Origin: Syncephalis fuscata S228
Lineage: Eukaryota; Fungi; Zoopagomycota
Direction: 5' to 3'
NCBI GenBank assembly: GCA_025786725.1
Contig: JAHLTZ010000012.1
Coordinates: 662,020 to 726,019, forward strand
DNA: 64,000 nucleotides
Of the stretch, positions 26,949-27,055 are shown piece by piece (the stretch's first letter is position 1; each line of letters begins with the position of its first letter). The notes beneath the pieces are model-generated. The model did not search any database and was not told the origin of the DNA. It saw only the letters and a program-made list of their open reading frames with translations. Both the position numbers and the translations under genes were made by a program.

Positions 26949-27055
26949 TTAATAGAACGTAATACAACTATGTTGTATATAATAATAGCATGACTTCAAT
27001 TGAAACAGATTTTGCTTTAAGGACTCCAAATGTGGAGCCAAAGTACAATTCAGCC
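26949..27055 (+). ncRNA. Candidate Fanzor omegaRNA scaffold or element 3' end (copy 1)
   Basis: Non-coding sequence 3' of remnant B, homologous to 47034-47137 (-). Folds as a long stem-loop. Function is inferred only. Confidence 0.4.

Follow-up and report, generated by a model that had tools for sequence, protein, structure and literature searches.

Fanzor remnants and conserved tails in the window

The window, a 64,000-nt stretch of contig JAHLTZ010000012.1 of the fungus Syncephalis fuscata S228, belongs to a 29.4-Mb eukaryotic assembly of ~36% GC with short GT..AG introns. It holds C-terminal remnants of Fanzor genes. The A-type remnant lies on the minus strand at 26390–26596 and carries VDIDEYNTSK..., a CxxC motif, and WQRDVNASRNM; it matches PF07282 (TNB domain) with 20.2 bits (E 6.5e-4). 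The B-type remnant, which is 5'-truncated, lies on the plus strand at 26701–26948, runs from DLTSQICPKC to NCDYMAFINIRSIL, and scores 20.2 bits (E 6.9e-4). Both are below the PF07282 cut-off of 26.3 bits, and sister copies are above it. A profile of four remnants matches 177 proteins in a library of 1.84 billion proteins. In the full-length homologues (559–1037 aa), PF07282 lies C-terminally and scores above the cut-off; aligned, these proteins display the catalytic layout TDG/DPG, DEY.TSQ.C..C, and WNRDVNASRNI. A full-length Fanzor profile in turn matches the genome with E-values down to 2e-30, and the A remnant with E 1.3e-18 (C24:688427-688615). PDB sequence searches with the remnant, P0004, P0008, and P0021 give no significant Fanzor match, the best being P0021 against SpuFz1 (8gkh, E 0.07). 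The homologue P0004 has NRDHMAS at a position where WNRNHMAS stands in most B-type copies, in which the codon of the RuvC-III aspartate is thus changed.

A conserved tail directly follows the TNB-domain remnants, at the 3' end of the former TnpB/Fanzor ORF. As defined by the alignment of copies and by its boundary, the tail of copy B occupies 26949–27055 on the plus strand. Its counterpart in copy E occupies 47137–47034 on the minus strand. The two tails are identical at 80 of 104 aligned bases (77%) with a single 3-nt gap, and their homology is a continuation of that of the Fanzor C-terminal remnants. The open frame of B extends to a TGA at 26991–26993, and the first ~40 nt of its tail may once have been coding.

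A single RNA run (X1), available as contigs, covers the surroundings of B. The contigs of neighbouring genes are spliced, indicating that the run is RNA; small RNAs would not be retained in it. Depth is ~11 over 26864–27047 versus ~3000–13000 over the neighbouring GDH2, in contigs in which RNA ends and small RNAs are invisible. To the right of B, 27100–27950 is a spliced, expressed gene on the minus strand (introns 27278–27337, 27395–27466, and 27690–27749; depth ~290). The minus-strand ORF 27112–27276, once a candidate for a third Fanzor remnant, is part of this gene and was rejected. The transcript of the gene ends close to the right end of B, which places the supposed guide region at or near the 3' end of that gene. 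RNA contigs with loose ends on both sides also map to 26128–26311 (depth ~545); their probable source is the A-type tail repeat at other loci rather than at this one.

Ends and architecture of the transposon family

In DNA searches of the whole assembly, the B remnant with its tail returns 548 first-look candidates and the B tail alone returns 86. We retrieved and aligned 64 copies, of which 57 were used for covariation and 47, with independent flanks, for the boundary test. In nearly all aligned copies the family homology stops at the same base, after ...CAAAGTAMAATTCAACC. In the 47 copies with independent flanks, the mean pairwise identity falls from 63.5% over the final 30 nt of the element to 32.7% over the 30 nt beyond it; the first flank base (+1) is A in 81%. 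The boundary reads TTCAGCC in B (27055/27056) and TCCAACC in E (47034), so that the candidate scaffold ends at the right end of the transposon and variable flank follows.

An earlier note, made from B and E, had proposed that their homology continues for ~105 nt past the last protein motif and that the element ends at 27055/27056. Both proposals hold. The homology is real, and both copies belong to a family of hundreds; the element end is firmly confirmed by a common, sharp 3' boundary in ~47 independent insertions and by a corresponding 5' end that is likewise sharp and has an inverted repeat. The note's further statement, that similarity breaks just after TCCAACC/TTCAGCC, is true of the family but not of the pair B and E, which remain 61% identical over the following 70 nt, as the same inverted remnant module comes next in both. 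The tail is, with near certainty, a genuine right end, that of a transposon family which is very abundant, decayed, and without genes.

Hundreds of family copies keep only the last 70–140 Fanzor codons and the tail. The copies are ~10–25% diverged, and 75% of the differences from the consensus are transitions. Per-site change rates are 0.20 for C>T, 0.19 for G>A, 0.10 for A>G, and 0.05 for T>C; the variation is dominated by C>T and G>A decay.

Copy E is a complete, gene-less, 'ghost'-like element of 655 nt (47034–47688, minus strand), which is found full-length, with sharp 5' and 3' ends, in >25 of the retrieved copies. Its upstream part, 47300–47688, is a repeat of 86–93% identity with 354 first-look candidates and a sharp start. 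The left-end inverted repeat GGAGCTACTGTACTTTGACTCCCACATTTT lies at 47659–47688 on the minus strand, and its nt 9–30, in reverse complement, match the right-end consensus AAAATGTGGGAGTCAAAGTACA exactly. The B copy of this 22-nt repeat lies at 27027–27047 on the plus strand and coincides with the 3' arm of a long predicted hairpin, SL2. The 3' arm of the hairpin therefore also belongs to an imperfect terminal inverted repeat of 30 nt, and the tail overlaps the right inverted repeat. The complementary 5' arm occurs only at the right end; the left end lacks it. The elements thus have two 30-nt imperfect inverted repeats, a short interior, and no Fanzor ORF beyond at most ~125 residual codons.

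In the left flanks, an ATTAA motif occupies −11 to −6, and 25 of 27 copies have T at −9. Three copies (L011, L101, and L110) are flanked by perfect 8-bp target duplications and a fourth (L099) by a 6/8 match; most other copies have none. The flanking 8-mers match at 3.43 positions on average, versus 2.81 for shuffled pairs (p 0.045), and an 8-bp target-site duplication (TSD) seems likely for this family. If the 8-bp TSD is real, the left flanks of 27 elements (L088–L114 and others) place ATT directly before a duplicated AAWNNNNN, which is the expected position of the TAM under a homing model.

B is itself the right part of a composite gene-less element (26116–27055). In this element, an A-type module (left, minus strand) and a B-type module (right, plus strand) are joined head-to-head with their tails outward. 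The A-type tail (26116–26389, minus strand) ends ...GGGAAGTAGCTCT at 26116, where the tail end reads ...GTAGCTCT. On the left, the composite has AGAGCTAC... at 26116, a terminus homologous to the left end of the family. At five other loci, A-type tails break sharply at ...CAAAGTACAGTAGCTCC, which is the reverse complement of the family left end. Therefore, the elements are bounded by two outward-facing Fanzor 3' modules. The 8-mers flanking the composite, AATGTTAA (26108–26115) and AATATTGA (27056–27063), match at 6 of 8 positions, and in this flank comparison 27056–27063 is the probable right copy of the TSD. The A/B junction recurs at five loci (L032, L033, L031, L035, and L042), with the B part always starting at the base equivalent to 26701 of the window; a single ancestral chimera of two right ends has apparently been amplified.

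An additional B-type C-terminal coding fragment (46876–47033, plus strand) adjoins the right end of E in inverted orientation after the spacer RTARCC. RTARCC and the inverted fragment follow the right end in ~10 copies and, in decayed form, in B. Copies with this module are found after 27056 and at L012, L017, L020–L022, L039, L044, L045, L055, and L106. These copies differ in their left flanks, indicating that they do not stem from one segmental duplication. The spacer and inverted fragment give a ~140-bp foldback around the tail.

Predicted fold and covariation

The B tail is predicted to fold into a short hairpin, SL1, of 6–8 bp (26969–26992; UAUGUUGU / AUAGCAUG), and the long hairpin SL2 (27008–27050; GAUU.UGCUUU..GG.CUCCA AAUG UGGAGCC AAAGUA.AAUU), which contains mismatches. 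The minimum free energy (MFE) of this fold is −21.8 kcal/mol, with a z-score of −1.89. In E, the 3-nt deletion removes the inner CUCCA/UGGAG stem, and the z-score is −0.22. The same two hairpins are predicted in four other copies (z −0.8 to −2.5) and in the family consensus (−22.6 kcal/mol); over all six copies the z-scores, −0.2 to −2.5, denote weak stability. The composite fold drawn in the earlier note from B and E together is therefore seen in part: B forms the long hairpin with mismatches, but neither copy forms the full fold.

Two explicit structures pair 85–88% of alignment cells, versus 34–46% for slid controls, a figure that is biased because the structures derive from the consensus. 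Covariation across 57 copies, for the MFE-derived structure and that of the earlier note, does not exceed shuffles (0.171 vs 0.168; 137 of 500 shuffles score as high). RNAalifold on the 57 tails returns only a weak 6-bp stem of −0.92 kcal/mol. Five subfamily consensus sequences have identical stem cores and are thus uninformative for covariation, and Rfam has no match at the gathering score anywhere in the window. Compensatory changes therefore lend no support to a secondary structure in these alignments.

The earlier note had pointed to a G-C to A-U double change in the outer helix that keeps pairing. The change is present between B and E, but among the 57 copies G-C occurs only in E and in one other copy, L017. 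At this pair (alignment columns 56/107), 17 copies have G.U and 11 are unpaired. E and L017 have a downstream flank in common, and the double change is confined to one lineage. The note had taken such paired changes as support for an RNA unless generic C>T/G>A decay explains them. This decay dominates the variation, and the argument from covariation falls by the note's own standard.

A different hint of RNA structure comes from comparing tail types. In three tail types of different sequence, the terminal bases, which differ between the types, pair with a segment further upstream in a retained closing helix: GAGUUAC/GUAGCUC in the A type, where it closes the terminal hairpin of the tail that ends at 26116; UUGAA/UUCAA in the B type; and GUCAACUAUUUA/UAAAUAUUGAC in subfamily 2. 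The retention of a predicted closing helix with different bases is suggestive of RNA structure. Subfamily 2 tails of ~210–230 nt occur at L026, L027, L029, and L030, after a coding end that is 87% identical to that of B. They end ...AAAGTAAATATYRACC and have their own terminal hairpin and a palindrome, ACAATYGATTG.

Outside this genome, a metagenome scan with the 15-mer GGGAGTCAAAGTACA gives 120 loci, none with extended similarity to the element, indicating chance matches. The tails of the nearest full-length homologues are unusable for a cross-species alignment: the contig of one (L121) ends 35 nt after the stop codon, and the tail of the other (L122) has no DNA similarity.

The nuclease gene and the role of the tail

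No intact Fanzor nuclease gene is found in the genome among the best-scored candidates. Searches with P0008, P0004, and a 15-protein full-length profile (360, 420, and 653 first-look candidates, respectively) match only the last 70–140 residues. A profile of the N-terminal part alone gives one real locus, C317:733828-734270. This is the only near-full-length Fanzor-like locus found (L254, G000:C317:730500-738000, minus strand, ~2300–5200). Its RuvC-I exons are open (SITTDG...AVDPG), with at least one GTAAGT..AG intron; its RuvC-II/TNB part has a stop after IDEYLSFR, the CxxC in another frame, and further stops. The locus is GC-richer than the ghost copies and has a tail of the subfamily 2 type. 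Judged from these frames, the gene is apparently broken, and the genome seems to have lost its Fanzor nuclease. Three weak matches (E 5e-5 to 3e-4) to positions 25–98 of the N-terminal profile (G000:C46:518372-518602, C46:582572-582802, and C24:557715-557885) may be N-terminal fragments or chance.

Mainly by its position and by analogy with characterised systems, the tail is probably a fossil omegaRNA scaffold that doubles as the right inverted repeat of a Fanzor1-type transposon. On this reading, the decayed, non-autonomous DNA transposon family descends from a Fanzor1-type (eukaryotic TnpB) gene, namely from its 3' end. The ancestral autonomous element would have encoded the scaffold in its last ~90 nt, in the order SL1, SL2 with the inverted repeat, and ~7 unpaired nt, and this DNA would also have been the inverted repeat bound by the transposase. 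The guide would have come from the flank, probably after the 8-bp target duplication, which by analogy puts it in B at ~27064–27078. The position of the tail, its size of ~90 nt, its overlap with the repeat, and its two predicted hairpins fit the published Fanzor1 pattern. The scaffold proposal of the earlier note thus keeps its positional part (location after the TNB remnant, overlap with the right repeat, and the two hairpins) but gains nothing from covariation, fold stability, Rfam, or clear expression in the single RNA run. Its placing of the guide in the next ~15–20 nt needs correction, since in TSD-making Fanzor1 transposons the TSD lies within the scaffold and the guide beyond it (PMC10711439), a shift of 8 nt here if the TSD is real.

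The same DNA could be a transposon end and nothing else, kept by descent and by binding of a DDE-type transposase, its hairpin incidental and never part of an RNA scaffold. Much of the evidence fits that account: the 22-nt core of the candidate scaffold is the inverted repeat common to the left end; the TSD and target motif suit cut-and-paste transposition; covariation is absent and the fold z-scores are weak; and hundreds of copies were amplified, no intact nuclease gene being found. The most conserved part of the tail is the inverted repeat, and transposase binding alone could explain its conservation. We nevertheless regard the account as rather unlikely. The complementary 5' arm that makes the hairpin is present only at the right end, three tail types of different sequence keep a closing helix and an inner hairpin by the terminus, and all characterised Fanzor/TnpB systems encode the scaffold here, overlapping the inverted repeat (PMC10530073, PMC10432273, and PMC10711439). 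A former mRNA end is far less probable. The region would then be mostly a C-terminal coding extension plus the 3' UTR or terminator, with no role in guide RNA or transposition, as the open frame of several copies, which runs ...FQRNQIVCYI...ITMLCIIMA to the TGA inside SL1, might suggest. However, the homologue P0004 stops at the equivalent of ...MFQRNQ, well before the tail; one subfamily is missing 55 nt of the stretch yet retains its terminal ~92 nt; and a sharp end that carries an inverted repeat is the mark of a transposon terminus rather than of a polyadenylation site.

At the other extreme, the tail would be a working omegaRNA gene: ghosts like E, perhaps B too, would be transcribed, and a Fanzor nuclease encoded at another locus of the genome would take up their RNA in trans. 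The omegaRNAs of ghost loci are functional in trans with SpuFz1 (PMC10432273), and the C317 locus (733-735 kb) has open RuvC-I exons. But that locus carries a stop right after IDEYLSFR, a CxxC in another frame, and a different tail, and all other Fanzor matches are C-terminal fragments. The divergence and heavy C>T/G>A decay of the copies, the loss of the inner stem in E, and the very low depth over the tail in the X1 contigs also weigh against it, and we give it little credence. Given the decay of B and E, the missing inner stem of E, and the lack of a detectable intact nuclease gene, present-day guide-RNA function of the two copies is unlikely. A further, speculative reading, which we think improbable though less so than a working gene, takes the double-ended elements as two outward-facing omegaRNA-like modules from which a guide could be read in both flanks. 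Separately, it takes the multiplication and persistence of >600 modules, with the nuclease seemingly extinct, as a sign that the right-end module became independent of Fanzor, as a transposase substrate or as an RNA used by the host.

If the tail is a former omegaRNA scaffold, the genome records the end state of a Fanzor invasion, with the nuclease gone and hundreds of gene-less modules left. This would bear on whether Fanzor ends spread through the transposase alone or need the nuclease, and would provide a compact candidate scaffold of ~90 nt for pairing with the closest intact homologues. In annotation, the Fanzor relics with conserved tails across the genome can be read as a single repeat family, whose exact ends, inverted repeat, and target motif are given here.

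The family consists of ghost-like Fanzor elements, a kind already known, and these copies are a new instance. In S. punctatus, Fanzor loci occur together with 134 ORF-less ghost loci flanked by 30-nt inverted repeats, and the omegaRNA scaffold of SpuFz1 is a 75-nt region spanning the 3' inverted repeat, with a guide of 14–15 nt beyond (PMC10432273). Like these Spu-1 ghosts (Saito et al. 2023, PMC10432273), the present elements are short (~550 nt there, 655 nt here), have ~30-nt inverted repeats, and are far more numerous than gene-bearing copies. They also have a conserved module of ~75–90 nt across the 3' repeat at the position of the omegaRNA scaffold with variable flank beyond, and a conserved motif upstream of the 5' repeat. 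Unlike them, they retain the last 70–140 Fanzor codons, have 8-bp TSDs in some copies, show no sequence similarity to the Spu-1 scaffold, and are accompanied by no intact gene with the same repeats found in this genome. As upstream motif, the present elements have ATTAA at a distance of 5 nt from the end, and Spu-1 has CA directly adjacent to it.

Fanzor1 transposons of the TIR/TSD type have both the TIR and the TSD within the reRNA scaffold, and the RNA extends ~15 nt past the TSD (PMC10711439); the fRNA likewise overlaps the IRR/TIR (PMC10530073). The present tails resemble these reRNAs (Yoon et al. 2023, PMC10711439; Jiang et al. 2023, PMC10530073) in the overlap of the candidate scaffold with the right TIR, the probable making of TSDs, and several predicted stems without a pseudoknot. 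They differ in that the RNA was sequenced there and has a three-stem shape, whereas here two hairpins are predicted. Fz1 omegaRNAs comprise an SL1 of 7 bp, SL2, and the guide, with a single SL2 in SpuFz1 and PpFz1 (PMC11423790). The tails are similar to the latter two (Xu et al. 2024, PMC11423790) in an SL1 of ~7 bp (6–8 bp here), a single SL2, and a short single-stranded junction before the guide, a likeness of predicted folds only, for remnants with no significant match to solved Fanzor chains.

A literature search for Fanzor-derived MITEs found nothing relevant. The family shares with MITE-like cut-and-paste transposons a high copy number, TIRs, the lack of a complete ORF, a target preference, and an 8-bp TSD in some copies; it differs from them in that both ends derive from Fanzor 3' modules and TSDs are recognisable in a minority of copies.
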